64,000 bases of DNA from Orbicella franksi. Its lineage: Eukaryota. A program made the translations under genes and the position numbers. The DNA lies in the NCBI GenBank assembly GCA_964199315.1, contig OZ116705.1, positions 30,442,001 to 30,506,000 on the forward strand, read 5' to 3'. The first letter of the stretch is position 1, and every line of letters begins with the position of its first letter. Below are positions 28,728-58,200 of this stretch, in pieces. The notes below the pieces were generated by a model that saw only the letters and a program-made list of their open reading frames with translations, was not told the origin of the DNA and did no database searches.

Positions 28728-30102
28728 TCAGGTAGTTTCATAGAAGACTTCGACTTCGTCAGGACGGTAGTAGGGACTACCCGCCAGGAATGATCGTGTG
28801 AAGGAGGATCCGTAACTGTTGCCAGGTGGCGGGCTGTAGGTGTGTCCAAGGTTCACGGCGTGTGAGTAGGTTCCTGATGCCGCGTTGTTGCTAATGTAAA
28901 TATCGTGTCCTCCTCCAAATGTTGGTCCATAGGAAGAACAGCTGTAGATGGAATAGCTTCTATAATAACTATACTTTCCTGTCTGATCTAGCTTTAATGG
29001 CTGCCAACCAGGCTTATTAACCAATGAGAAGAGAAAGGCTGCTGAATCGTAGCGATATCCACAACTGTAACCTAATTTGAAATACACAATGAAAAAAGAA
29101 GTCCAGCATTAATGATGTTTACTGACACTTTGGACAGTTTAGTAATGACGTATTACCGTCAGCGTTCATTTGATTGGCTCACAAAATTTTACTCTTATTC
29201 GTAGCTCGGCATTATTTCTTGTAGTGTTAATCTTAAGCTGTCTGGTTCCTGTATGTTAAATGTCTCCTGAGTCTTTAATAATTTCAATTCTGGGATAAGC
29301 AAGCCCGGTGGGAGACTGGAAACAGCTGCCCTGATTTCAGACTGAATATAATTTCCATGCCCTGTTTTATAAATTTCATAAAATTAATATCGAGTTGTCA
29401 AGCCGGCTGTCAAATAGCCAGGAACACCAAGGCGTTTTTAAAAAATGCAAGTGTTTCTATCGGCCTGTTTATCTCGATGAGTTATCCAGAAAATTCGTAG
29501 TATCATTGACTTATTTGCCTTTCTTTGGTATTACCCTTTTTTGTTTCCTTGCTTAATTATTTGAAGCGGTTGTACCGCTTCCTATAAAGTTCTTCCATCC
29601 CGATATCTCCCTAAAACCGTCACGAATCAGAAAATTGCGCGTAAACACAGCAAGGATTACACCATAGAAGTAAGATAAGGCATTTTTTAAAGAATTTTCT
29701 AGCACTTAACTATCCCAAACCATATTGTAAATATTCCCTTTTTTAAATTCTTTTTGAAACTCTTATCCCATATTTCTCCGTGACCGCTGTTGCGAAATAT
29801 GATCATGGCCGACTCACAGCTTGAGCTTGGGTCGCCTGTGATAAGATCAAATTGATCACGTCACTTACTCCATGAGACACTTGTGTATCCTCCAAAAATA
29901 TATTTTCCAACACGGATGATTGTGACAGTTGGACCTTTGCCGTCACAGTATGAATGGAAGGTATAGGAAGACCAGCCATTTACAGTTGCCCGGTAACAGC
30001 GATTCCAGTAAGAAGATTGGCGAGTCACAGGCTTCAACCATTTATCCAGCCATGTCAAAAAGTTTTGGTTGTTTCCCACAATGCTGGAATATTTAAGACC
30101 CG
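28728..30102 (-). other. TLDc domain (last two exons of the multidomain gene)
   Basis: [39 protein letters not shown]...AFLFSL...[13 protein letters not shown]...EVEVFY are TLDc hallmark motifs. Confidence 0.85.
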
Positions 30103-33100
30103 CTGCAAAAATAACATATAAGAACGTTCTTTGGATCCATTTTGTACCTATCATTTGTTTTAGTGGACCATGTTGAAAGTTGGTTTTGCTAAGAGTTAAT
30201 AACACTGTCATCTTCACCAGTTATAAGGTGACCATCATTGCTTACACCGTAAATGTGACGCTAACTAAACTGGATGTTCTGTTTGTTGGAAACATATTTT
30301 ATATGTGGTCGTTATATGCCACTGTGCAACTTAAAATATTTTTTATCTGGAATATCACTGCCTACATTTTGGGTCGCAGAGATCAATACTCTCAATAGAT
30401 GATTTTAAATCCTGAACAGGAAAATATTCGGAGAGTATTTGTCAGGAAAACGTCATATCATTACCAATGCTCCACGCCGACCTCAGAATTCTCAATGGAA
30501 AAACCAGCGGCAGATAAAGTCACGAAATTTGACAGATTTTTTAAATATTTAAATTTTGAAAAAAAGCTATTAATGGTTTAAGTCCACGTGGGCTGTTTCC
30601 GCTCCACACCCCACCGCTGTCCTTTCTAAGTGCGGTTAATGTTAATGTCAAAGCGTGTCTGTGGTCGCGAGGAGATAGCAAACAACATTAATGACTCGCG
30701 TTTTCTTTTAATTGCAATAGCAACAGACCTTGCAATATGACAAACTGATCCAAGGTGGAAACGAGAATTCTGATTGGTCCCTGAGCGGTCCGAGGTTTGC
30801 ACTACTGACCGCTAAGACGCACCATTCACGAAGTAGTTTTGGCAAATTGCTTTTCTTGGAAGCATTTCACAGAAGACAGCAGTTTGTAATTAAGACAAAA
30901 TCTCAGGGTCTTTTTTTGTTTGTTTTTTGACATCATATTTGGTGGACAACTTGAGCTTAATTCCGACCGCTGCAACATGAATTGAAGTACAATCAACGTG
31001 AAATACTCACCTGCCGCGGTGTACCTGCAGGTTTTTCCGTCTCCTGATAAAGGATGGTTACACGTACATGTGTAGGATCCTACAGTGTTCGTACATGAAG
31101 CTGAACGGTGGCAGTCGTGTACACCGCTGACACACTCATCGATATCTGTGGGTAATAATGAACAGGGAAGAAGAAAGAAAACAAACATAAATTATGTTAT
31201 ACTTTGTCACAAAAAGTGTTTTATTGTCTAAAGTAAGAAGCTTTCGTTGGTAGTACTTTAGTAGTACTTTATCGTAAATTCTATAGCACGTGTCGTGAAT
31301 AGAGGCTTACCATGTCTATTAATAAATCTCTCAAGAGAAACAATCCTTGTTGTAGAGCGTTGTCATGGCAATCATATTGCTGTTCCTGGTCACATGTTTG
31401 CATATCAAAAGATCCCGTTTTTCAAAGAACGTATGAGAAATGTCATTTTTTGGGGATCTATAGTTTATACCCTTGAGGTTTTTTCCGTGAATAGAGCAAG
31501 AATAAACATCCACTCTTTTTTTATGTTACATCCAAAACGAGAGTGAGCTCATTAAAAATCATAAATATATTTTACATACTATAAATTGGTTACCGTGTGG
31601 CACGACATTTTTGGAGGAGTTTAATTTTTCGGATCGGCGATACTTTTTGCTTTTTTTTTGCGGGAATTATTTCTGGGATTGTGAAAGACTGGATATTCGT
31701 GCTGGGTATTCGTGAATTTTGTAATGTTGAGAAAGTGGCATTTGCTGCGTTTTTTTGTTGCACTTTACGGTAAGCTGTAAAGCGCGGTAAGGCGCGGTAG
31801 ACTCATGTATGGTTAATTACCTCGTCTCAGGATCGAGCGGCCCGGATTCGAGACCTGACCGGAGACACTGCGTTGTGTTCTTCGACAAGTAACTTAACTT
31901 CTCCACCAAGGTGTTTAAATGGGTACCGGCGAACTGAATAGTGGGGTTAACCCTGCGGTGGACTAGCCTCCCGTAGAGGGGGGATTACAAACATTCGTTG
32001 TTGCTTCTTGCTACGCGGAAACTGGGATAAGCTCCGGCCTGATAACATGGGCCACTTGGCTCGTACGCAAACTTTCCCTTCACGGCAATCAAGTAGCCAG
32101 TCACTCTGGAACAATTACATCCTGCCCCAGTCTGGCTGGTAGTGCCTTCAGATGATCTTTTTCTGTCAAGTTTTAGCAACTACACCTGTCGTGTACCACT
32201 GGCAATTTCATCGTTTTATTTAAAGACGTTTTAAATAAATGGCATCAACAAGATTCTGCATGTGAGGCTTGTTTGTATAATTTCGACAATGGAGTAAAAT
32301 TTTGTTTGCGAATTGTGGAAAAAATGCAACTTGAAAATTGCAAAAATTAGGACCAGAAAAAATTTCGTCCCATACTGTGGGCGTATAGCTTGATTTTCAT
32401 GTGGTATCATTTCATTTCGCAGTATTTTTTTAGTTCTTGTTAAGCAGATATAACTTACCAGTGCAATTTTTGCCATCTCCTGAGTATCCAGGTTTGCACG
32501 CGCAAGTGTAAGATCCACGAGTATTGTTACAAACAGCATTCGCATTACAGTTATGAGAGTTTGAAGAGCACTCATCTATGTCTAAAACAAGATTAAAGGA
32601 GTAAATATGGATAAACGTTGAGTTGTCGTTAGTCTGACCATTTCACAGAGACTAAAAAAGAAGCACACAGCTCTCTGATTCATTCTCTGTTTTTGGATGA
32701 TTTATATTACCCTGGTTATAAACCACTGGCGCAGGCATCGAAACTATTAAAAAGTAAAGCTACTACAGGGTTGAACCTTTTTTTCTATCCGCCTTCTCAT
32801 TACACAAGAGCGGTTGATTACAGTTTCTTTTAAACCTATCAATCCAGGAGAAATTTCATAGTTGTTGAAAATAAAGTGAAATTGTTATTAAATTCAGTAT
32901 CCACATCGAATATTGTTTGTTTCAGTATTGCTTGATTAGTAGTATCAACATCTAATGTTGTTTGTTTGATGGTTGGTTGGTAGATTTCTTACCATTACAA
33001 GTTTGTCCGTCTCCGGTATATCCAGCTCTACACTTACAGGAATATGAGCCCACGGTATTCACACAATCTGCATTCACGTCACAGTTATGAGTGTTGGTGG

Positions 33101-36100
33101 AGCATTCCTCCAAATCTGCAACAATTAAATTGGGAAAAAATGAAATAGTCATCAAATAAACGAATAATGTTTAAAGTATTGCTTTGTAAGAAATTATTTT
33201 GAAAATGAACCATGGATTTTTTGAGGGTGCAAGATTATCCTGGCTAAATTCTGGGAGTCTACCATGTTTTTTTATAAGTAGATTACAATGTAGTTTAACA
33301 GCATTAAGCAAGAGATTAATCACCTGTAAAGCAAGTAAAGTTGAAGCATTTATCGCATGGCACGTCATTCCAAGTGTATCCATGCCTCACGCCAAGAGTG
33401 TGCACACAGTCTCCGTTGTTCCAGTTGTTTGGTTGCTGTGGAGCCCAGAACCTAAAACTGCTAATTTCTTTGTTTGTCCACACAAAAGAGCCTTCAACAC
33501 TGCGGTCATTCAGCCCTATCCATGATCTATCGCCAGCATGACGGTGCTGAATATATACGTTTTCCTCCTGGTTGTGCACTGTAACCAGATCAGAGTTCAT
33601 CTCAGAACAGTTTGACTCAGCAGTCAACCATGTTGCGCATGCGGGGCTTGAAAAGTAGCAATAACCACCAAAGTAAGTCCATCCTGGCTGGCAAATGTCT
33701 GTAGATGTAAACAACAATAAATCCATAAAAAGTAAGAGAAATCATTAAGAGTGTCTTGAATGTTTTTAAAGGAAATAGTTGTTTGTCATATTTCTGCAAA
33801 GCCTTCAAATGTTTTGGCATTTTTACTCCTGACTGAAACATTGGACGTCATTTGCCATGAAATTAACTTCTAACAATCAAATTCAAGAAATGGCCGGATA
33901 AAATCCTATTTTTAACAGTGTAAGTGACAGAAGTTACTAAAATATGACTACTAAAAGAGCTAAACTACTGATTTAGACATTAGTAAAATTAACAATGAAT
34001 TATTTTGTCTGTACCTGACAGGACAGTGTATGAGATAGACAGTGGATCATACTTTGTGTCGTACAACTCTTTTAAACAAACTCGCACACCGGTCGTATTG
34101 ATGTACTGCAAAAAAAAAAGAACAAAAATAATCAGTGGTCTTCTAAACTGAAGTCGAAAAGATAATTTTCACAACGCTCACGGTGATATTCTGAAATATT
34201 ATTTACTCTTCGGAAGAAAAAGCAAACTCATACCTCCCTTGGGTTTTCGTTTTAGTAAGACATATCAACATTATATCATTTGCATCTTGTAGGTATCCCT
34301 CAACTTTCTGTACAACAGGAAATGTTTTTGTCGATTTTGACTTCGGTTGTCTTGAAGACGCCATCTTGTATTTTACGATTTTCCCCGCATTCAATTTGAT
34401 GGAAAATAACGGATGTAAAAGGGTACGATACTAATTCTGCATTGATGTTCCCCCTTAAAAAATTGGAAAAAACCAAGAACTCTTTCAAATAGACGAAATT
34501 TGGTTCGACTGGCCTGTCAAAAATGCAGTTGCTATGGAAATGCCCAAAGACGTGAAGAAACAGAATTACCTCCACCCAAGCAGTTATTCCATTGTGTAGT
34601 GGTTGTCGATTTCCACCGCTAGACGAATGGTTCGCGGAAACGAACACATTCGGGGTGCTGTTGTACTTTTCAGTAAAGCGGATATCCTAAAGAAAAACTC
34701 TCATTAAGCAAGCAGGGTGTTATTCAACTTTGGCCACTAGCAAACTGAATTTTATAATAACCTACTGAGTGAGTATTGTTTAAATTGACACTGTTCTGTA
34801 GGATCTGTACACTAACTCTTAAATTTTTGAAAAAGTAATTCTAAGCAAGCTCTCTAGTATACGTAAGACGAAAAAGATACCAACCTTGCAGTAGGCATTG
34901 TTGTAATCTGCAGGTGGATGTTGGGCGTTAGCAAAATAGACTGAATCATGTTCTGTAAAAAGAGGCTTGTGGAGAGAAGAAAATGCCAACCATTTCTAAA
35001 AGACAAAAATAAATAAATGTTAACTAGAAAATTGAGATGGGAATAGTATTTTTTCGAAAAATTAAGTGAGATAGCCATAACCAAACGTCTAAATCAACAT
35101 TCTATTTCTTCTTAATATGTGCCGATGTTAAAGTATGCTAGAGACTTAGCTACTAATGCTAAAGACCAGTGTTAAGAGGCTAAAGTAAGTGATAAGGATC
35201 TCTCAATACCTAATGTTTGGTACATAAAAAAGGTGTAGACACTTACAGCATAAACATCGTCGTGAGATCCTGCGTAGTTCTGAAGCTCTCTCAAACAAAC
35301 TTTAAACGAGGATTGCGTGACGTCTTCAATCCACACACTCGCAGCGTCACGCTTGAGTCCTGCACGATAGTGCGCTGCGGTAACAAACACTGAAGGTGTC
35401 ACTGAAAACTTTCCCTGCATAGAAAACAAACAAAACACAAGCTGTTACTGTTGATGTTCCACTTACTCATGCTACTACTGTTGTTGTTGTTACCTTAGTA
35501 CTGTTTAACATTAGCGAAGATTTGAAAATCTAGTGATGGCTAATGCTCTAATGGCTAAGTGATAGGTGACATTTTAGGTCCATTAGTCCAAAGGAAATCA
35601 TGTCATATTGAAATAAATCCGATGACTGTAAACTACTCGAAATTGTTCTTCGGGAACTTGAGTTGTAAAATGAAACGAGAAAGTACTTACCGATGGAAAA
35701 TTGACAGATTTACAAGTCGTCCCAGTCCACCATTGTGATATCCGTACTTCCCCGGCAACACCACCCACTGGAGCCCCTTGGTACGCCATCCAATCAACTG
35801 TCACGTTAGCTTTTGATTTCCGCTCATTGTAGCCTGCCGCCATCACACACGCGGTGAATCGATCATAACTGACATTCTCAACCCACGACACAGCGGCATC
35901 ATGTACATATGACTTGTCACTGGTGTCAACATGATTGACAGTGATCTGAACTTCAAGTGGTTTGTAAGGATAAAACACATAAGGCTTGAGGCGAATTACT
36001 TCACAATGAGAATATCCCAGTGAAGGAATGTGTGGCATGTGACGGCGACCTCGCTGGAAAGGAAAACCTTTAAAAAAAAGAACAGTACAAAACACTAATC

Positions 36101-39100
36101 AGTACAAACGATTTACACTACCCAGGTTTTTTCATCGTAATCATCATTATCCTCTTCGACATTGTCAGAAATTTCAGCCTAAAAAAATTTCTAACCTTCA
36201 CAACTACCAGGGTGTTGCACAGAGAAATTCAGTCGCTGAATGCACATTTCCTGTCGAAACAAACACTCATTGTCGTATGTTGTGCCATTTGGTGAGCAGA
36301 CTGGTTCTTGGTAGGATGGACAACTGTCAACAGCAACGCAGCGAGCATCATTTGGTCCAAACGCTTTACACAGGCAATGATAATGACATGTCACGTCGAT
36401 GCAAGGATCCAAGTCTGGCGGGAGATATAAACAATCAGAGCAATTGTGAAGAAAGGATTTGATCTTCTAGTACACGCTTGCTTGATAGTTATCCACACTT
36501 CCGTCTTCCCTGTGTGGGTTTGCAAGGTTTTATAAATATTATTGCAATGAGCAACACCGCTGAGGGGTAAAGAGAATGTTAAATATACCAAGTGATTTTT
36601 CTATCTCCAGATGGAATCTTTTTGCCTACCTCCAGTGACCATGTAGTCGACAGTGATAACATCTTTATTGTTGGCGTCGCTGTCGTAATTCTTCACACAC
36701 ACTTGTGCATCAGTTGTAGATGTATGCTGAATAAAACAAAAAAGAATTAAACCCGGCCTGGTTCATGTTGTTATAGTACGCCAGAAAAGTATTTTTAAAA
36801 AAAACTGATATAAACGAAAGTTACAGTGAAACAAAAACTCGCTAAAATCGCTTTGAAACGGCCCCGAAACAGCGTAGAAACACAAGTCACAAACAGAAGA
36901 GTTCAAGTAATCGCTTTTATTTAATTTTGCTTCCATACGTCGAGCTGTTATATGCGAATGTTACATTCCCATATATACTGTTATATTTACGTTGTTACGC
37001 AATGTCATATAATGTTCACGGGTCCCGAGGAACTTGGGAAATTTGTGCCATTACCTGATGAGTGTTTGCTAAACTCACAAAAGGTAAAAGGTAAAGTCTG
37101 CATGCGAGCCAAGTGGCCCATCAGGCCGGAGCTTATCCCGGTTTCTGTAGCATGAAGCGACTAGGAGTATTTCTACTCCCCCCTGGATGGGATGCTAGTC
37201 CATCGCAGGGTTACCCCCAGCATTAAGTTCGCTGGTACCCATTTATACACCTGGGTGGAGAGAGGCACTGTGAGAGTAAAGTGTCTTGCCCAAGAACACA
37301 ACACAATGTCCCCGGCCAGGGCTCGAACCCGGACCGCTCGATCCGGAGACGAGCGCACTAACCATGAGGCCACCGCGCCTCCCAAACTCACAAAAACATC
37401 ACAAGAATTATTCCTTACCTCAACCCAAGCGGTGACAGCGTTACAACGTGACCCAGAAAGATTAGCATTGTTGTTGTTGTCAGTGCGTTTTGGCGTCACT
37501 AACACAACAGGACGAGCATAAAATGGTTTTGTAAAGTTCACTGTCTGCAATGTAAAAGAAAAAAATAATTTAATATCGACTGTATTCCCGCGAGACTCTT
37601 TTAGAGGTAAGGTTGATAAATAATCTGGATTGGTATTTATAATGCGCTGATTCCAGTGTTTGGATTCCAAATCACAGCGGCTTTGACTTGAACAGGGCCG
37701 ACCTGCACCGTTTACAACGGTCTTCATGATTGGCCAAGCGAGACAATAGTTATACAACACAAACAATGCCCCTAGCCCTAGAAACAAAAGAGGTACAGAT
37801 TGACAAGAACGAATCAAAACAGAAGTTTTAAAGAGGTGCAGGTCATCTGTTTGAACAAGAGGAAAAGTATGTTTGATTGGGTCTCAGAAACTATTTATGA
37901 CAAATTTTGTGGGCCCACAGTTCAAATAGTTACATGTTAACAGTCAATTTTAACTTCCTCCATTGTAATGAAAGCATTGCTGTTGTTGTCCTTTTGATGC
38001 CCTATTATAAAGAGGATTTAGATAAGAAACAATAATGCCGCGGGCTGGCAATAATTATTCTTACTTGACAGAAAGCGTAGTTATCCTGATCAGATGGTGA
38101 GTTTGTATTGGCAAACACGAGACTGTCGGTTATGGTAAAATTGTCAACACTCAGATTTGTAAATGCCATCCAATTCTGCAGAACAAATAAAAGATATTGT
38201 ATTTAAAACCTGCCAATTATTCAAGAAATAAAAACATGCACAATTAAGGACTGTTTTAACCAACGTACAAGAGTACATGAAATTATCAGCAAGATACGCA
38301 AACCCAGTAAGATGTTGATAATTTGCCTTTTTTCAGAAAAAAAAATCTATAAAAGAAGCAACTCTCCTTGTGTATGCATTCAGCTGCTTCCAGTCAACGG
38401 TTTCTAACACATGATTTCTACAAGTAGCTTGAGGTTTATTAAAGAGCTAACAAAAACATATTTTCTCTGTATTGTTTTCTTTTGAAAGCCAACGATTGAT
38501 GTTTCGTACTGGTGCAAAAAAGACTCATTTGGAACAGCTTGAAAATGGAAGATGATCGGGCACGTCACATGGGAAGTTGACCTCTGATATATTTGGAACA
38601 TCGTAACGCATGTAAATATTTCAGAATGCTGTTCTTTAGTCAGGGGTCATCATGGTTTTCATTCAACTTTGATGAAGTGCATATCTTTGGCAGAGCGTAG
38701 TTGATTAGAATGACAAGTGACAGAAAACGAAATTTAAATTTACTCACTATCTTAATGCCTTTATGGAGTCCATCGAAAATCTTTGCTTGTCTGAGACAAA
38801 TTTTGAAATTGTCCACGCGCAACTCCTCCACCCACACGGCCATGGCATCTTGAGGTCTCTTAGGAACTTGGTGACTAGCAGTTACAAATATGGTTGGAGG
38901 AGTAGAAAACCGCTGAAATGATATAATGAGAGAAGTTAAGACTAGTAAATTAATCGAGTGCATGCCTTGGTGAATGACCGCATGAACAGATCAGCGAACA
39001 TGTGAATGATCAATAATGAGAGAATGCGTGAATGCTTGCTTGAGCCTTCAAATGTTCTTCAACTTACAGACATTTTAAAAATACAAAATGCCTCAAATAA

Positions 39101-42072
39101 CAAATTAATATTTAATAGTGAGTCACGTTACACGCCGCAGAAAGTGTAAATATTTTCACAATCAGAGTCCGCCGAGGATATTTTAGTTATTCAAAAAGGG
39201 AACAATACGCTTAAATCCGAAAACTACTAATCAGCTTATTGTTAAGCGGTTTTGATCTTTTGCATTAGGAATATTTGCGTTTGATGAGGAAAAGTAATCT
39301 TTGTAGTTAGTCTCAATTGATAAATTAAAAACGCTGTTTAATTTCAACAATTTTCAACATAGTGACATTAAACTCACGTTTTTCGATTGCATTGAAACAG
39401 TTTTCTGTTCAAGCTTAGCCTTATGTTGCTCGGTAACTTTATTTAAATTACAAGGCAATTGTTCTACTTGAGGCAACTTCTCTTCAAGAGAGGCGGCTTT
39501 TTAGTGTTTTTCTTCAGTTATTGAGGAATATTCCGTATTTAGATATTTATCCTCTGATGCTATTTGTTTCGAATACTTTCTGCTGAGCAATCACGCTATA
39601 TTTTAATGGTCAGCGTTTGCACAAGTCACGTTTTAAAAGGACAGATGATCGACAATTTTCAGCAAAGAAAATTGATTGCCTGACTCGTGATTTCCACGTT
39701 AAATTTCGCGCGAGAAACCGATATCGCACAAATCGCGAAGTGAAGCGAGCTCGAGAAAGCGAAGCGAGAAAACGTTGACTGATATTCAACAACGTCCGGC
39801 AAACAGTTTTAAGTAAGAAATATTTTTACACTGAAATTAAAATTTCAATACCAGCTAAATTTTCAGCGTTCAAGTTCTTCGAAAGAACAACGAGTACTAG
39901 GCAAGATGTATTTCTCGCAGCAGAAAAGCTTTCTGAGAACTGCCGTTGTGCCATATTGCAAGTTAATAGATATATTTAGTGGGGAGTTGTTAAACAATGC
40001 CCGGCCAGTAAACAGTCAACTGAGAGCTCTCGCTGTAAATCACAAGTGATTGTTGCGTTGACTGCTGGTGGCGAAGCAGGCCCGCTGTTGACATCGCAAT
40101 TTGTCGTAAACCTTGGGTGGAGCCGGAGCCGCTTCTAGTGTACGCAGTAGCGCTAAATGCAAACCCAGCCACCTTGTTTGACATACTTCGTCGTTTTTCA
40201 AGAGGCTGTAACTTAAAATTGAATCTATGTTAGCTTGACCTGTCAGCTCCGAGATTTTAAGCGGAAGAAAGCCGTCGCGTAGGCTTTTAATATGACTGCA
40301 GTTTTACGGTCGCCAGAGTTTGTGAATTTGCCATCCAAGGACGCGGTTGAGGCGATGGCCTTCGTCTAGTTTGCAAGTGTATTTCAGCCGAGAGGTGACA
40401 TCTTATACAAGATACTTGGTGATGGTTTCTTAACTGAAACATTGTGACCCTTATGGGATGGCCTACATACTCAAAATGAATACTGTACTGTAGCTGTGCT
40501 TTTCTTAGTAGTTGGTGAGGTAATGTTCGCCTTGAAAGCTGCCATTTCGTCTTCTACGCATGTCCAATTGGCACTGGAGCTTCCTCGGCTGCCAAACTTT
40601 GCCTTGCGGATTTCCTTCGTTTCCTTCGGCCGTTTTCTTGTCCAAGCCGTTATGATTTTGTCGTTTTCTGGTACTCGGAATCGTAAGCGATTTCTTATGT
40701 CTCTCTAAAAAGTTGTACTTCAGTTCAAAGCATGGAGAAACTTCACTTTCACTTTGAAAAAGACTTGTGCTTGTTTTTAGCTCCGTAGATTGCGGCAATG
40801 ATTTTGCAACATGATTAAAAGGTCACTTTCGTTTTTTTTTGTCGCATCGGTGAACGATCACGCAAACTCTCGTTTTTAGAGTCGTAATTTCACGCTAAAT
40901 ACCTCGCCTTGGTAGCCAAGACCGGCGCTTTTGATGCTGTAAACAACCTCGTTACATAAAGTAAAGCTCTCTTCGCACTAATTCCTTTCAAAAATATTAG
41001 CAACTTTTTGACAAATTCTGCACACAAAAAAGACTGGCAAACCGTTTTAGGCAGTTTCTGCCAATATTTGGCAGCTTTTTGGCATTTGTTTGTTTGTCTT
41101 TTTTGCATTTTTTAAGGAATTTCTGAGTGTATGGCCAGGTTTAATTCTTTGATCGACAATTTCTACACACTGTTTCTTCATCTTTTGTCATACTGACTAG
41201 ATTAATTCGTATACTGCAATCATCATTTTTTAGGGTTAACTGACGATATTCATATTTTGTATTTTGTATTTTTTCTTTCTAACATTCACATCCAAAGTCA
41301 GGGCTCCCTATTTCATGAACTTTTTATATATCTCTTTACTTTCTAAACCACTTAACAAAACAAATTCTAACCTGCTGGAAATCGATCCTCTTGCATTCCG
41401 TTCCAGTTGTCCAAGAGTTTAAGGATGTGGTGCCAGTTTGAGATCCATTAGGTTTCGTTTCAAACGCAAGATAGTTTACCTCAATGGACTTGTTTGAACC
41501 GATGGCAAATTCTAGAACACAGACTGTAAATTCACTCGCTTTAACTTCTTCTACCCAGACTGCAGCGCCGTTCCGAGGGGTTTGGCTCTTCACGGTATGG
41601 CCAACTGAGGCGAGAACCGTTACTTGCTGTCCGCCGTAAAATGGCGTTTGGAAGTAAATCTTCTTACAACCGAACAGCCCTGGTGAGCTTGTTGTTACGT
41701 TTTCTTTTCCGGCCTTGAATCCGAGTGCTGTAAAGGAGTAAATAAAACTTTTTTCTTCAAAATGATCGCACTTACAAAGTTTTAACTGAATGCACAACCG
41801 ATATCCTAGGAATGGACATGTTGATTGCTTTAGTAAGAGATTAAATTCTCAATTTCCTTGATCTGTGCGCCCCTCCCCCATCTTTCAGTTCGCTTCTTCT
41901 CTGATCAAAAACACATAAAAACGCCTGAGCTTGCCGTGAGAAGTTGAATTAAGGTTTACATTCAGAGAATGCAACTGAGAGTAGATACCATACCTTCAGT
42001 GGCTGGAGCACCCAGGCAAACCAACAAAACAATGAGAAAGAAGTGCATCGCGTATTGGTGCTCAGACGACAT
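28728..42072 (-). CDS. Predicted secreted multidomain protein, 18 exons, 1116 aa: signal peptide, 3x H-type-lectin-like, follistatin/Kazal, 3x H-type-lectin-like, C-type lectin, 3x cbEGF, TLDc
   Basis: Exons: 41994-42072, 41372-41727, 38748-38912, 38065-38175, 37419-37544, 36630-36726, 36196-36414, 35691-36067, 35247-35414, 34885-34995, 34570-34686, 34015-34105, 33324-33698, 32993-33115, 32459-32581, 31011-31145, 29869-30102, 28728-29071. All GT-AG, phase-compatible, 3351 nt, no internal stop. N-terminus [27 protein letters not shown] is signal-peptide-like. Confidence 0.85.
31011..33115 (-). other. Three calcium-binding EGF exons (phase 1-1)
   Basis: DLEEC/DIDEC starts, six Cys each, and the NTxGSYxC hydroxylation consensus. 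Confidence 0.92.
31789..32080 (+). mobile_element. tRNA-derived SINE, full-length diverged copy
   Basis: Colinear with 37082-37383 in the opposite orientation. Confidence 0.8.
33324..33698 (-). other. C-type lectin domain exon
   Basis: [44 protein letters not shown]. Confidence 0.92.
36196..36414 (-). other. Follistatin-like/Kazal module exon
   Basis: DPCIDVTC...[22 protein letters not shown]...HPGSC. Confidence 0.88.
37082..37383 (-). mobile_element. tRNA-derived SINE, near-intact, with a CORE-like segment
   Basis: Minus strand: A-box-like TGGCCTCATGG, B-box GGTTCGAGCCC, CORE-like TTCTTGGGCAAGACACTT and an (ACCTTTT)n tail. Five copies occur in the window. Confidence 0.85.
39990..40710 (-). 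mobile_element. Decayed, internally deleted Crypton-like tyrosine-recombinase transposon in intron 2 of the lectin-TLDc gene
   Basis: Frameshifted peptides [22 protein letters not shown] (N-terminal part) and [22 protein letters not shown] / [26 protein letters not shown] / [10 protein letters not shown] resemble the YR catalytic end FTNHSxRKT...TGHxNxxSxxxY. Confidence 0.6.
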
Positions 42073-48293: not shown

Positions 48294-49957
48294 TTACAGC
48301 CCTTGTTGCCAGTCCTGTACAATCACATCTTGTATCCAGGGTGCAACCATTTCAGCGACTTCCTCTGAAGATTACAAAACAAATGCATGTTTCAACTTCC
48401 TTTCAAAAAGACAGATCTCCCCTTCAGGAAACTTCTTTTTCATGTCTTCATAATAGGAGACTGGTGCCCAATGGTCAGTCGCTCCATAGTAAAATATCAA
48501 CTTCTTCAAATTTTGTTCAATCACCTGAGAAAGAAAATTGATAATGTCAGTGCAGAAACAATAGTGTCCATTATTAGTTATTTGCTTCAAGGACTGTATG
48601 GCATCCTAGAGCATTTCTGACCATTCAGATGAGAACTAAGCACTGTGCTGTTCAAGGTGGTTCTACCTTTTAAATCTATGGATGAAACTCTGGTGTATGA
48701 CCATTTAAAGTAAAGCTATTGAGCAGTACTTTCATATGGTACCGTTTATTATGCTGTACAAGGTGGTTCTAACTTTTAATTCTATGGATGAACCCTTAGT
48801 GTGTGACCTTTCAAATGAAAGCTATTGAGCAGTACTTTCATGTGGTGCTGTTTATTATGCTGAACAAGGTGGTTCTAACATTTAAGTCTGTGGAACACAC
48901 TCTTGTGTGTGACCATTTAAAAGACAGCACTTTCATATAATACTATTTGTGTTATTAATATTTACTTTTGCAAAGTGATATTAAATTTCATTCCTTTTTA
49001 TTTGAAATTTGACACTCCAGGAGTGTGCTGTTTTTAAAGTTCCTCTTAATCAGTGTCAAGTAAATGTGTAGATTCTTTTCAGTCTGTTGTGTCTTTGAAG
49101 TTAGACTTCAATAAAAAATGTGAGGATGAAAACTTAGTGTGTGACCACTTAAATGAAAGCTACAGGGCAGTACAACGTTCTCCTAGTCATGTTACATGTT
49201 CAATACTGAAGACGTCATACGGCTCTTCTTGTTGAATAAGGCTGGTATGAGCAGGCTTTCACCTGCTCTCACTCACTCGCGCTGCAAAAAAAAAAAAAAA
49301 ATACATGCTTTGTATTTAGTCACCCTCCCTGCTCTCTAAGCTTCACTTGTAATCAAATCTAAATACCAACTTCTAAAGTGAAATTTCAAAACTTTGTGAG
49401 TGCAAAACGCAGACTGCAGACCGGGATTATTTTATGGCATACCTCTTCATCTGGGTCAACCACCTCTTTCATCTCATCACGTGCCATTGTCAAACAACCA
49501 TTTACAGACTGTGGAGTAAGAAGCTTGAGCACTGAGTCCACCGAGCTCAGCATTAAATTCTTCTTGTTGCTCAACCACCACTGGACAAGTCCTTTTTTAA
49601 CAAACTCAGGTAAACAAGAAAAAGCAGTGACTGCAGCTATTGCAAACCACTTAAAATATGTCACCATCGGAGTAACATATCTGCCACTGGGCGATATTGC
49701 CATTCTTTTGATGGTCGGAAACAATAGAATACTTTTGGTCACATCTGTAGCTCTATTACAGTTTTTAAGAAGGTGAAGTATTATGTAAGCTCCTATAGAA
49801 TGTCCAATGAGTATTATTTTAGATTGTGATGGAATGTGCTCTTCTAAGAATACCTTCTTGTGCGTGATTTGTTCATCAAGACTGAGTGGAAAGCTGTTTG
49901 ATTCAGTTGCATCAATTGGACTTGGATTCGCTGGATAATCATTTGTTGGGGAATGAC
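48294..49957 (-). pseudogene. LDAH: Lipid droplet-associated hydrolase (LDAH)-like; last two exons, premature stop
   Basis: Exons 49443-49957 and 48294-48524 encode EQITHK, LIGHSIGAY (GxSxG), LLFPTIKRMAISPSG, KLIFYYGATDHW and HAFVL. TAA at 48372-48374 is followed by 25 more in-frame codons. Upstream exons (PGNPG motif) were not found. Confidence 0.7.
48620..48930 (+). repeat. ~106-bp tandem repeat array in the LDAH intron
   Basis: About three units, e.g. tgacc at ~48698 and ~48804. Confidence 0.8.
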
Positions 49958-50759
49958 CTGAATAAGGAAATGATGGATACCATAAAATCTCTCATAATAG
50001 GCAGTTCCTATACAATTCTGTAAATCTGTAAGGTATCTATTCCATTTAACATACTTGTACACCCCGCCCCGCCCCCTATTAATAAGGACCTTTTTTCCTG
50101 ACCCTTTCAGACAGTTTTTCCTGGAGTTACCCTTTTCCCCCTTAGGAAAAGAGCCTATTTAACAGTGGGGCTTAAGAAATTTAGCATTTTGCAGTACGGT
50201 CCTCATCAGAAAAAGTATATCCCTATAACCCTGTTGATGATGCAACTTTCTTCACTCTCCCTTAGAAATTTACTCTTGGCATTGTACCCCTTCAGACATG
50301 AACATTTTGAATGATAACCCTCAGAAAATCTTGTCTATGAGTGACCCCCTCAGAAAATGTCATTTCTAGGGAGTGGGGGTTGGAGGGTGGAGTGTGGATA
50401 TAAAATGGAGCAGCCCCTAAAAAATATGAATATATACATACCTATACATATAGTGTTTGGTAAGGCAGGTCTGAATATGGCGGCCTAAGGGCTGGTGTGG
50501 ACCTGCCATAAAATGTAACTAACCTAATATTTTACAAAGAAAGAAAATCTTAAAAAGATAAAATGTGAAATATGCAATATACAAGTTATATGCGATATAC
50601 AATGTACATATTTACAGTTATAATCGTAATGCGCATTTTCGTATTTCAGTGGCACAGTAGAAATTTGTGTACAACGATGCTTCTTCATTCACCCTGACGA
50701 AGACCGACAAGTCGGTCGAAATATAGGTGTTCTTTATAAACGTATGTTATCTTCATTTG

Positions 50760-55200: not shown

Positions 55201-58200
55201 TCTGTAACTTTTTATTGCAATTGAATATGGAAAAACGCAGACACGCTTTTTTAGCGCTTTTTGTCCTGAAACCGAGGAAAAAAATAAATTGGCGAAAAAC
55301 AAAATTCGCTTTGACTTGTAGCTTCCAAAAGGTGATTAGGACGCTTGCATTTAGTGGCCGTGAAAAAATCGGCAATTCATTTTATTTCAAAATTTTTGGT
55401 ATGGTTTGATAGCCAGCTCTATACGCTTTAATTTGATATAGGGGCTTAGGTATCTACAGCTTAAATCGGACGCGTTACATCGCTTGGACGCGAGACACCC
55501 CTGAAGGTATACGGTAACCTTAAGGAAACAATTAAGCTCAATGTTTTAGTTGACAAGGAAGCGAGTACTTCATAAGTTTTTTTGTTATATCCTTACAGGA
55601 TGTTCTCAAAGTACGTCAATACAACAGCAGTTCGAAATTATTGAGGTGAGAGCAAAAACAGCAACCTACAAATTCTGACAAATGCGCTCTTTTATCTCAC
55701 TAATCAAGAGTGTCTTGCATTAACTTTGTTTCTACTTTCTTGCCTCAGAAGAAAGAAATTAAGACGTGAAGGCAGCAGGCCTAAGAATGGTCACCCACAG
55801 CCGAAAAACAATGGTTGTGAATTTTCCCTCGATTATGGAGTACGTACTTTAACTTCAAAATTGCTTTAAATTGCATATCATGTTCGATCTGTAATATTTG
55901 TTCTGTCGTATTGACTGGATAATGTGAATTTTATTCTTTCAGGAGAATGACTCGTTAAACGACGAAAATCGATCACTGCCTGGATGTTACACTCCTGAAG
56001 ATTCCGATTTTGTCGAAGACGTCAAAAATTCAGAACCACCTGAGTATGTCAAGCAACTTGCTAATACTGGTATGTGAAACAGTTTCTCCGGCGTATATTG
56101 CCAATTTTCATCACAAATAACAGCTACTCAACAGACATGATATCAGGGATAAATGAGAACCGAGAAATTAAATGCAGAGGGGTAACCCTGCGATGGACTG
56201 ACATCCTATTCATGGGGAAGTAGAAATACTCCTAGTCGCTTCATGCTACAGAAGCCGGAGATAAACGCCGGCCCGATGGGCCACTAGGCTCATATGCAGT
56301 CTTTATCTTACTTATAAAACAGAAGCGAGGGCCGTATTGAGTGAATATTTTCACCAGGTCTTGACATTTCTGATCGAGCAAAATTAAGCGAGTTCGGTCC
56401 AAAATGCCTATGGTTAGGGCCGATATTCTCCCAGTAAGCGGTCTCAATTAAGCTTAGTTAATCACGAACATACAAGCGTAATAGAACCGTATTCTTATTA
56501 TTTACTTATTTATTTGTAAATTTCAGCTGATTTTGCTAACTTCGAGATAGGCACACTCCTTGGAACTGGTTCATTTGGAGAGGTCGTCGCTGCAACACGC
56601 AAGAAAGACAATGTGCCGGTATGTTCATTTAATGTTGGTTTCTTCTTCATCAAATGATCACCGTGATGATTCGATTTGGAGGGGGACCATGTGCCTTTTG
56701 AGGGAGGGGTGGGTGATTTTGAAAAGCAAATAGCTTGCAAGCAAATCATACTTTATCCAAAAAAATTCATGTACACCACCCTGAATTCCGAAATAAAAAA
56801 TCCACGCTCGTTCAGTGTGCTGATATAAGCATGTTACACAAAAAATATTATGCATACACACGAACAGAGAAAAAAATGTCCTAGTGCATGAAAGCTTTAA
56901 AAGAAAAAAAAACATTCAACTCTGATTGTAGCTAATCACACACGCACACACCTCTCCTCAAAAGTGTTAAATGGCCCACCCCTTAACTCCCTCCTTCCTA
57001 TAAGCGACCCTAAAGCAAACGTGACTTTCAAGACATTGACACAGAATAGATTGATTAAAATAATAAAATACGAAGAGTATGAAAAAGGGTAGTAATTTTG
57101 TTTTGTTTTCAGGTGGCGCTTAAATTTGTAAAGAGGAATTCAGTGTCCGAGTATAAAAAGGTTAGTAACGGTCACAACAACATCAACAACAACAACAGCA
57201 ACAACAACGACGACGACGACGACGACGACAATAACAACAACAAGAATTGCTTATTTTCCGCCTTATTTCGAAAGATCTCAAATTTACCCCAAAGGGGTAA
57301 ATTTTAAAACTAGAAAGAAGAGCAAACTTATATTTCAGCTCCGACGAAGGGCTAAAGCCTTAAACTTCAGCTTTCGCCAGGGATAGCTAAGTATATCAAT
57401 TCCTCACCCTCCCTCCCCTCTCTTGTTATAGCTGAATGGGCGACTGATCCCCGCCGAGGCGTATCTGCAACGTCTAGCACGTCACCGCCACGTCATCAAA
57501 ATCTACCAGCTAATCTTCACAGACGAATTTTACTGTTTCGTAATGGAGCGACCGGAAGAATGCAAGGACTTGTTTGACATTATACAAGACCGAAATAACG
57601 AGAACAAGCCGCTAACAGAGAAAGAAGTTAGGAGGTACTTCGCCCAAATCTTAGAGGCCAACATTAAGTGCGAAGACAGAGGTGTCGTTCATAGAGACAT
57701 CAAACCAGAAAATATTTTGGTGGACATGCGCACTGATGAAGCCAAGTTAATTGATTTTGGGTTGGCATCTGAGATCCAGAGAGAACCTTTCACGACATTT
57801 AGAGGTAAACTGAAATTGTTCCGGAGATGTTCCTTTTAGTTCAAATAAAGGCACTGTGTAGACTTCACAAGAAGGCATTAATTATCTTGTGCGAGTTAAA
57901 ACTTTTAACAATTCGATTATGAGCTCGAGATTTCTATCGCTTAATAGATGACGAGAGCGCAGCCCGAGTCAGCTATCACGCATAGAAATCGACAGCGAAT
58001 AATCTAGTTGTTTTAGAATAAACCTACTAGTCGTTCAAAACGCTAGCTGATTCCTCTTCACAGACACTTCGAAAACACAAAGAAGCGGCCGCCATTTTTG
58101 TAACAACCGCAAACTGCTAGGCTGCTCACTATCTACAACAGAATAGCTAGTGAGTAGCGTAGCCAATCAGAGAACGGCATTCGTGATAGAACGCTGGTAA

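Follow-up and report, generated by a model that had tools for sequence, protein, structure and literature searches.

What is a TLDc domain, known from cytosolic proteins, doing at the end of a chain of lectin modules that begins with a signal peptide? The question is raised by a gene of Orbicella franksi on the minus strand of a 64,000-nucleotide stretch (assembly GCA_964199315.1, contig OZ116705.1, positions 30,442,001 to 30,506,000), called the window below; the gene runs from position 42072 to 28728. A first-pass annotation had read its product as a glycan-recognition protein that brings a TLDc module to the extracellular space or to the lumen of a phagosome or symbiosome. We agree on a predicted secreted protein with many glycan-binding modules and a genuine TLDc domain. 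The fusion is not singular, however: at least eight different heads, TLDc among them, occur at the C terminus of this LePin-type scaffold. We lean toward the reading, which we hold to be reasonably probable, that the gene encodes a secreted, multivalent LePin-type glycan-binding protein whose TLDc domain serves as an exchangeable extracellular binding head. The reading builds on gene structure, domains, fold, secretory features, family and head swapping, all directly established.

Exchange of heads on a shared scaffold

Searches seeded with a TLDc protein and with Oculina patagonica P0175 returned hundreds of anthozoan proteins with an H_lectin-Kazal-H_lectin-Lectin_C-EGF scaffold. Alternative C-terminal ends on this scaffold were D8C (uromodulin-like), F5/8 type C, fibrinogen-related, CUB plus SRCR, pentraxin, olfactomedin and fibrillar-collagen C-terminal (COLFI) domains. 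The window scaffold (amino acids [aa] 27-797) was 90% identical to that of P0308 (CUB/SRCR), 88% to P0274 (D8C), 86.5% to P0281 (F5/8C) and 84% to P0279 (D8C). Against P0177, which ends in TLDc, the identity was 46% in the scaffold and 77% in the head; against P0175 it was 73% in the scaffold and 47% in the TLDc head. Neither the window protein itself nor any protein of its own species was found in the databases, where the 90% scaffold match and the 77% head match were the best.

A per-domain comparison located the change. P0274 is 78%-93% identical to the window protein through the third EGF repeat (EGF3) and has no TLDc domain, and P0177 is 35%-56% identical in the scaffold domains and 75%-80% identical in TLDc. 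The identity thus switches between EGF3 and the first TLDc exon, which places the breakpoint in intron 16. Phylogenies of the two parts tell the same story. In the scaffold tree, the window protein groups with P0308, P0274 and P0281 (Shimodaira-Hasegawa-like approximate likelihood ratio test [SH-aLRT] support 98), so that four different heads sit on near-identical scaffolds, and the TLDc label requires at least four changes. In the head tree, the window pairs with P0177 (99), and both fall in a clade of 22 rows (99) whose members have H-lectin, collagen/Ig or EGF-only scaffolds. Montipora capricornis offers a very recent case of such an exchange: its P0333 (TLDc) and P0365 (CUB/SRCR) have scaffolds that are ~97% identical and diverge after the first EGF repeat. 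We considered whether these two might be isoforms of one gene and rejected this, as their substitutions are scattered; they are recent paralogs.

Recombination within phase-1 introns of the EGF stalk would exchange the heads, and the window gene would combine the TLDc head of one subfamily with a scaffold from another, the join lying in the EGF3/TLDc intron. Differing histories of head and scaffold, as in a recent rearrangement, and a gene that sits alone among unrelated genes are also what one might see if the fusion were an artefact of annotation or assembly, or a recent nonfunctional chimera whose TLDc exons lie outside the mature mRNA. We regard this as highly improbable. Splice sites are canonical and phases match along a frame that stays open through all 18 exons; the window, which has no N gaps, was searched for traces of another head and has none; and the EGF3-to-TLDc junction is the same in many annotated homologs and in one RNA-derived contig. 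The latter, P0328, encodes the H-lectins through TLDc as a single uninterrupted open reading frame on a 4220-nt Logan contig assembled from a sequencing run; since the frame lacks introns, we take the contig to derive from RNA, which would mean that mRNA of a paralog clade links the H-lectins to TLDc.

Gene structure and the predicted protein

We rebuilt the gene mechanically from the window sequence by listing stop-free segments of the minus strand, scoring donor and acceptor sites, and requiring AG...GT exon borders with matching phases. The result has 18 exons, an ATG at 42072 and a stop at 28728; the coding sequence of 3351 nt specifies 1116 aa, with the sole stop at its end, and all introns are GT-AG with consistent phases. 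The parts of the gene, all on the minus strand (-), are as follows.

41994..42072 (-): exon 1, start codon and predicted signal peptide (aa 1-26), ending in phase 1; sole hydrophobic segment (Kyte-Doolittle value 2.04), conserved N terminus, GT donor
41372..41727 (-): exon 2, H-lectin-like module 1 (aa 27-145); no Pfam match of its own, internal similarity to modules 2 and 4, module 1 of the AlphaFold (AF2) model
38065..38912 (-): exons 3 (38912-38748) and 4 (38175-38065), H-type lectin module 2 (aa 146-237); the P0175 and P0281 equivalents match H_lectin 2-67 of 67
36630..37544 (-): exons 5 (37544-37419) and 6 (36726-36630), H-type lectin module 3 (aa 238-311); H_lectin E 0.002 for exon 5 alone
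36196..36414 (-): exon 7, follistatin-like/Kazal module (aa 312-384, 10 Cys), phase 1-1; Kazal_2 E 1.7e-10, Kazal_1 E 5.3e-9
34015..36067 (-): exons 8-12 (36067-35691, 35414-35247, 34995-34885, 34686-34570, 34105-34015), second triple H-lectin set (aa 385-672), paralogous to exons 2-6; H_lectin E 6.7e-4 and 0.014
33324..33698 (-): exon 13, C-type lectin domain (aa 673-797), phase 1-1; Lectin_C E 5.1e-17, QPN and WND motifs from the translation
31011..33115 (-): exons 14-16 (33115-32993, 32581-32459, 31145-31011), three calcium-binding EGF repeats, each phase 1-1; EGF_CA E 3.5e-12, 9.6e-13 and 1.9e-10, D-x-[DE]-E-C starts
30103..31010 (-): intron 16, putative head-swap breakpoint, from the switch in per-domain identity
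29869..30102 (-): exon 17, N-terminal half of TLDc (aa 925-1003); Pfam TLD E 3.6e-11, 43.7 bits, profile 9-76
28728..29071 (-): exon 18, C-terminal half of TLDc (aa 1003-1116) and stop; Pfam TLD E 2.6e-7, 31.2 bits, profile 79-167

An ATTAAA lies 50 nt downstream of exon 18. Phase-1 introns bound every module from the Kazal exon on, as well as each five-exon lectin unit as a whole, which is the classical condition for exon shuffling.

Pfam profiles were run on exon translations, with cut-offs of 24.5 bits for TLD and 24 bits for H_lectin. Both of the last two exons passed the TLD (PF07534) threshold and jointly cover positions 9-167 of the 170-position profile, and EGF_CA/EGF_3 matched three consecutive exons (E 1e-10 to 1e-14). 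On single exons of the window, H_lectin (PF09458) scores stayed below threshold (16-20 bits, E 7e-4 to 0.014) because introns split each domain over two exons; full-length homologs scored 47-91 bits, and the scaffold relatives P0281, P0279 and P0274 (84%-88% identical) scored 79.5-91.2 bits. The second lectin unit (exons 8-12) repeats the exon pattern and phases of exons 2-6 and shows internal tblastn similarity to them, so that "six H-type-lectin-like repeats" is a fair description.

The lectin fold was modeled on the first three-module unit of P0274, 83% identical to that of the window, from 76 aligned sequences. AF2 returned 18 strands arranged as 3 x 6, with a predicted local distance difference test score (pLDDT) of 87 and a predicted template modeling score (pTM) of 0.88. 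A Foldseek search of this unit against the PDB found no H-lectin and gave only weak, PCSK9-like pseudo-trimers; VIA-align revealed the folds of the modules. Module 1 resembled lectin-like tailspike and pyocin feet (Z 8-9.2), module 2 discoidin I (Z 9.1), and module 3 both Helix pomatia agglutinin (Z 9.9) and the coral lectin SLL-2 (Z 8.1). Across the unit, feet of the tailspike and pyocin kind scored Z 8-9.5. As a whole, the modeled unit resembled single-chain pseudo-trimers, namely the PCSK9 C-terminal domain and herpesvirus dUTPase, and each three-module unit is probably a compact single-chain pseudo-trimer of this kind. The six-stranded module fold is thus shared with the H-type lectins (Helix pomatia agglutinin, Dictyostelium discoidin I/II, octocoral SLL-2; Z 8.1-9.9). 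Those are single-domain chains that form trimers or hexamers, whereas the window protein has three modules per chain unit, twice, that are predicted to be packed together. SLL-2 reportedly binds symbiotic dinoflagellates.

A hydrophobicity scan of the whole protein found a sole hydrophobic stretch, at aa 10-22; the next best 19-residue window reached only 0.96, which argues against any transmembrane helix. The start and leader are conserved among family members and are followed by a conserved FKAGK block. No KDEL-type signal was found at the C terminus, which reads ...FYETT. The mature chain has 53 cysteines and 18 N-x-S/T sequons, with no sequon in TLDc. The protein is accordingly predicted to be secreted. 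Signal-peptide cleavage would leave a mature chain of two three-module H-type-lectin units with the follistatin/Kazal module between them, followed by a Ca-type C-lectin, three calcium-binding EGF repeats that form a short stalk, and a globular C-terminal TLDc head.

The first-pass annotation had described a clean 18-exon frame with a signal peptide, six H-lectin-like repeats, follistatin/Kazal, a C-type lectin, three calcium-binding EGF repeats and a terminal TLDc domain, and had noted the lack of a transmembrane helix and of an endoplasmic reticulum-retention motif. Our rebuild arrived at the same coordinates and exon number, and the hydrophobicity scan, C terminus, Pfam matches, homolog scores and fold matches bore out the rest. 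The AlphaFold modeling it had proposed, here run on homolog stand-ins, recovered both the H-type lectin and the TLDc fold.

The gene is a lone copy at this locus, as its neighbors are unrelated: exons at 49389-49991 (-) encode a lipid-droplet-associated hydrolase (LDAH-like; Pfam LIDHydrolase E 4.9e-38) and exons at 57432-57836 (+) a protein kinase (Pfam Pkinase E 3.7e-26). A tblastn search of the window with all 376 fetched proteins found no alternative head exons (D8C, F5/8C, fibrinogen-related, CUB/SRCR) and no second family member outside the 18 exons. We had entertained mutually exclusive 3' heads at the locus and rejected them on this result. A database fragment, P0012, aligns to 29095-29175 (-), intron sequence that adjoins the acceptor of exon 18. 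The fragment probably stems from a relative's gene model that retained the intron or was called wrongly.

The TLDc clade and the proposed role of the head

The TLDc fold was modeled on the P0177 head as a stand-in (62 sequences), with a pLDDT of 96 and a pTM of 0.92. The top 16 Foldseek matches in the PDB were all TLDc proteins (mEAK7, Skywalker/TBC1D24, OXR2, NCOA7, yeast Oxr1 and Rtc5), at ~20% identity and template modeling (TM) scores of 0.64-0.80 (OXR2, TMt 0.80), and a profile search of PDB sequences agreed. The head keeps the canonical core motifs, namely the FHxxCD block, the FGGGxD block and an EVEVF strand at the end, and the last exon of the window alone matched 1510 clusters at E<=1e-3 in a library of 1.84 billion proteins.

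As the first-pass annotation had stated, the characterized TLDc proteins among the PDB matches are all cytosolic partners of the V-ATPase. OXR1/OXR2, NCOA7, TBC1D24/Skywalker, mEAK7 and yeast Oxr1/Rtc5 share the fold, the Pfam family and the core motifs with the window head. They are cytosolic and bind the V1 sector, whereas the window TLDc is distant from them in sequence, comes after a signal peptide and extracellular modules rich in disulfides, and is part of a clade that has additional paired cysteines. Judged from sequence, the signal peptide, extracellular modules and paired cysteines argue for a noncytosolic compartment.

Every solved TLDc complex among the PDB matches is with the V-ATPase, and V-ATPase-driven acidification of the symbiosome matters in corals. 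The head might thus still target the V-ATPase or its accessory subunits, with the protein being taken up along with particles and modulating phagosome or symbiosome acidification from the lumen. We give this scenario very little credence. Identity to the V-ATPase-binding TLDc domains is only ~20%, the clade has what appear to be extracellular-type disulfides, and nonsymbiotic anemones own the same proteins. Moreover, the known TLDc contacts are on the cytosolic V1 sector, out of a luminal protein's reach, making such a role topologically unlikely.

The head is not confined to lectin scaffolds but is part of a large cnidarian TLDc clade found on other extracellular scaffolds too. TLDc domains of this kind are the C-terminal domain of many collagen-Ig-Sushi proteins (P0082 among them), of EGF-only proteins and of Nematostella TSP1-repeat proteins. 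N-terminal hydrophobic segments were present in 14/18, 17/23 and 11/14 of the TLDc proteins with extracellular scaffolds, by class, and in 0/12 of the BTB-, TRIM- and IFI44-type TLDc proteins, which have intracellular partner domains. In an alignment of 62 heads, Cys58 is nearly universal and Cys41 occurs in 52, the ten rows without it being precisely those that lie outside the cnidarian clade; 20 heads have both Cys87 and Cys125, and no head has just one of the two. The window head has exactly these four cysteines, which may form two disulfides, predicted as Cys41-Cys58 and Cys87-Cys125 in head numbering; BTB-type TLDc domains do not have these paired cysteines.

The predicted pairing bears on whether the head could have kept an OXR1-type stress protection and guard against reactive oxygen species outside the cell or in a lumen, be it in mucus, gastric cavity or symbiosome. 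The canonical core motifs and fold are retained, and characterized relatives have been linked to oxidative-stress resistance. Enzymatic antioxidant activity is not established for the TLDc fold, though, and current structures show V-ATPase binding. The co-varying cysteine pairs suggest structural disulfides rather than a reactive thiol, and the ease with which the head trades places with lectin-like ones speaks for binding. A protective role is in our view quite unlikely.

Company in the head slot offers another lead. COLFI and fibrinogen-related domains, which trimerize, occupy the same position, and in P0082 and P0042 the TLDc domain follows collagen triple-helix repeats, where a trimerizing C-terminal knob would be expected. 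TLDc, whose core is well conserved among heads, could accordingly be an oligomerization or capping domain that joins lectin chains or stabilizes the EGF stalk, with no ligand of its own. The solved TLDc domains among the PDB matches are monomeric V-ATPase partners or single-domain crystals, however, we found no sign of TLDc self-association, and the other slot heads (discoidin, pentraxin, SRCR, olfactomedin and D8C) bind ligands. Oligomerization is the alternative we take most seriously, and even so we think it unlikely.

The reading of TLDc as a binding head draws, indirectly, on three observations. The other occupants of the slot are all extracellular ligand-binding modules; the clade has acquired extracellular-type cysteine pairs; and the collagen-Ig-TLDc proteins mirror the collagen-Ig-fibrinogen layout of the cnidarian ficolin-like proteins (CniFLs), a lineage-expanded family of putative secreted or membrane pattern-recognition proteins (PMC5094078). 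Collagen-Ig(-Sushi)-TLDc proteins such as P0082 share the CniFL layout, with TLDc replacing the fibrinogen head. The window protein has no collagen, Ig or fibrinogen domain, and its parallel to the CniFLs is one of analogy, in the head slot only. On this reading, the position of the head would be a cassette slot in which close paralogs keep the scaffold and carry D8C, discoidin (F5/8C), fibrinogen-related, CUB/SRCR, pentraxin, olfactomedin or TLDc domains. The TLDc head might bind a host receptor or the surface of a microbe or alga, and the lectin modules would supply multivalent glycan binding, as for the LePin of Xenia.

More broadly, and tentatively, anthozoans may use TLDc as a disulfide-stabilized extracellular recognition head. 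It would have been shuffled via phase-1 introns onto LePin-like, collagen-Ig, EGF-array and TSP1 scaffolds, interchangeably with fibrinogen-related, discoidin, pentraxin, SRCR and D8C heads, giving a modular innate-recognition repertoire of which the window gene is one recently assembled combination. We consider this generalization a possibility worth stating, with the odds somewhat against it.

LePin relatives and a possible modular recognition family

Xenia LePin (Xe_002591) was described as a marker of the endosymbiotic cell type, with a signal peptide, H- and C-type lectins, Kazal and EGF repeats (PMC7332420). It is reported to be secreted and to bind algae, and RNA interference (RNAi) against it reportedly led to fewer new alga-containing cells (bioRxiv 10.1101/2022.12.13.520278). 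The family is present in stony corals and anemones as "LePin-like" lectins, and the published domain lists contain no TLDc (PMC7332420; bioRxiv 10.1101/2022.12.13.520278). A 2026 Palythoa preprint mentions "more diverse architectures" among LePin homologs, and neither it nor any of the LePin papers refers to TLDc. By the domain filter used for LePin-like proteins (bioRxiv 10.1101/2022.12.13.520278), the window protein counts as LePin-like: H_lectin, Kazal, C-type lectin and EGF occur in one chain, with a predicted signal peptide (hydrophobicity scan and conserved N terminus) and no transmembrane segment. It shares with LePin the signal peptide, H-type lectins, Kazal/follistatin, C-type lectin and calcium-binding EGF repeats, as well as the lack of a transmembrane segment.

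The first-pass annotation had named an existing characterized family with this architecture as something that would overturn its reading, and had expected that similar models might exist in databases as uncharacterized proteins. By domain set, the scaffold is that of the characterized LePin family, and the TLDc end is uncharacterized. Models of the same architecture, annotated as uncharacterized, were found in Oculina, Acropora, Pocillopora, Porites, Montipora, Stylophora and Actinia. TLDc-ending proteins aligned end to end with the window protein in Oculina patagonica (P0175, 64%), Acropora digitifera (P0226, 46%) and Pocillopora verrucosa (P0243, 45%), and also in Porites, Montipora, Stylophora and the nonsymbiotic anemone Actinia tenebrosa (P0319). 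Family models are named "uncharacterized" or are misnamed (fibrillin, aggrecan). In the comparison of symbiotic and nonsymbiotic species that the annotation had proposed, the architecture is widespread in anthozoans and, as the TLDc-ending scaffold of Actinia tenebrosa demonstrates, its link to symbiosis is not specific. The nonsymbiotic anemone Nematostella likewise has the complete LePin-like scaffold (H_lectin, Kazal, Lectin_C and EGF_CA) in P0357 and P0359. These current models contradict the published statement that the nearest Nematostella relatives of LePin are without C-lectin and EGF (bioRxiv 10.1101/2022.12.13.520278).

In the Xenia study (PMC7332420), two genes annotated with TLD only and misnamed prostaglandin synthase, Xe_000666 and Xe_000739, are listed among genes of a "pre-endosymbiotic" state; Xe_000666 has an N terminus that looks like a fibrinogen-related domain. 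The symbiotic cell lineage of an octocoral may thus express proteins with TLDc, some of them possibly secreted.

Several points weigh against the binding-head reading. The case for it is one of position and company. The likeness to Xenia LePin is by domain set, the window protein adding a TLDc head of 190 aa; alga binding and the RNAi phenotype belong to Xenia LePin, and, with no TLDc in the LePin domain list, LePin function does not transfer to the head. The head alignment showed no striking hypervariable surface, the loops being only moderately more variable than the core. The signal peptide was called by hydrophobicity and homology, exon linkage in the window gene follows from splice logic and homologs, and the odd cysteine count of the mature chain leaves one cysteine unpaired.

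The LePin scaffold, characterized in Xenia, and TLDc-ending models, annotated as uncharacterized, were already known; the head swapping, the TLDc clade common to several scaffolds and the clade-specific cysteines are new. Literature searches on extracellular TLDc from the angles of lectin, signal peptide, coral, secreted and PF07534 returned nothing relevant. With their clean breakpoints, these genes illustrate well how exon shuffling continues. TLDc biology is now framed around cytosolic V-ATPase regulation and neuroprotection. If corals and anemones do have a large radiation of secreted TLDc proteins, the fold would have a second, extracellular use, and the radiation would be a natural system for finding what TLDc surfaces bind. 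The LePin scaffold is among the few lectins with functional evidence in symbiont uptake, and caution is due that no single family member be read as symbiosis-specific. With exchangeable heads and a presence in nonsymbiotic anemones, the question widens from a single symbiont receptor to a modular recognition family.

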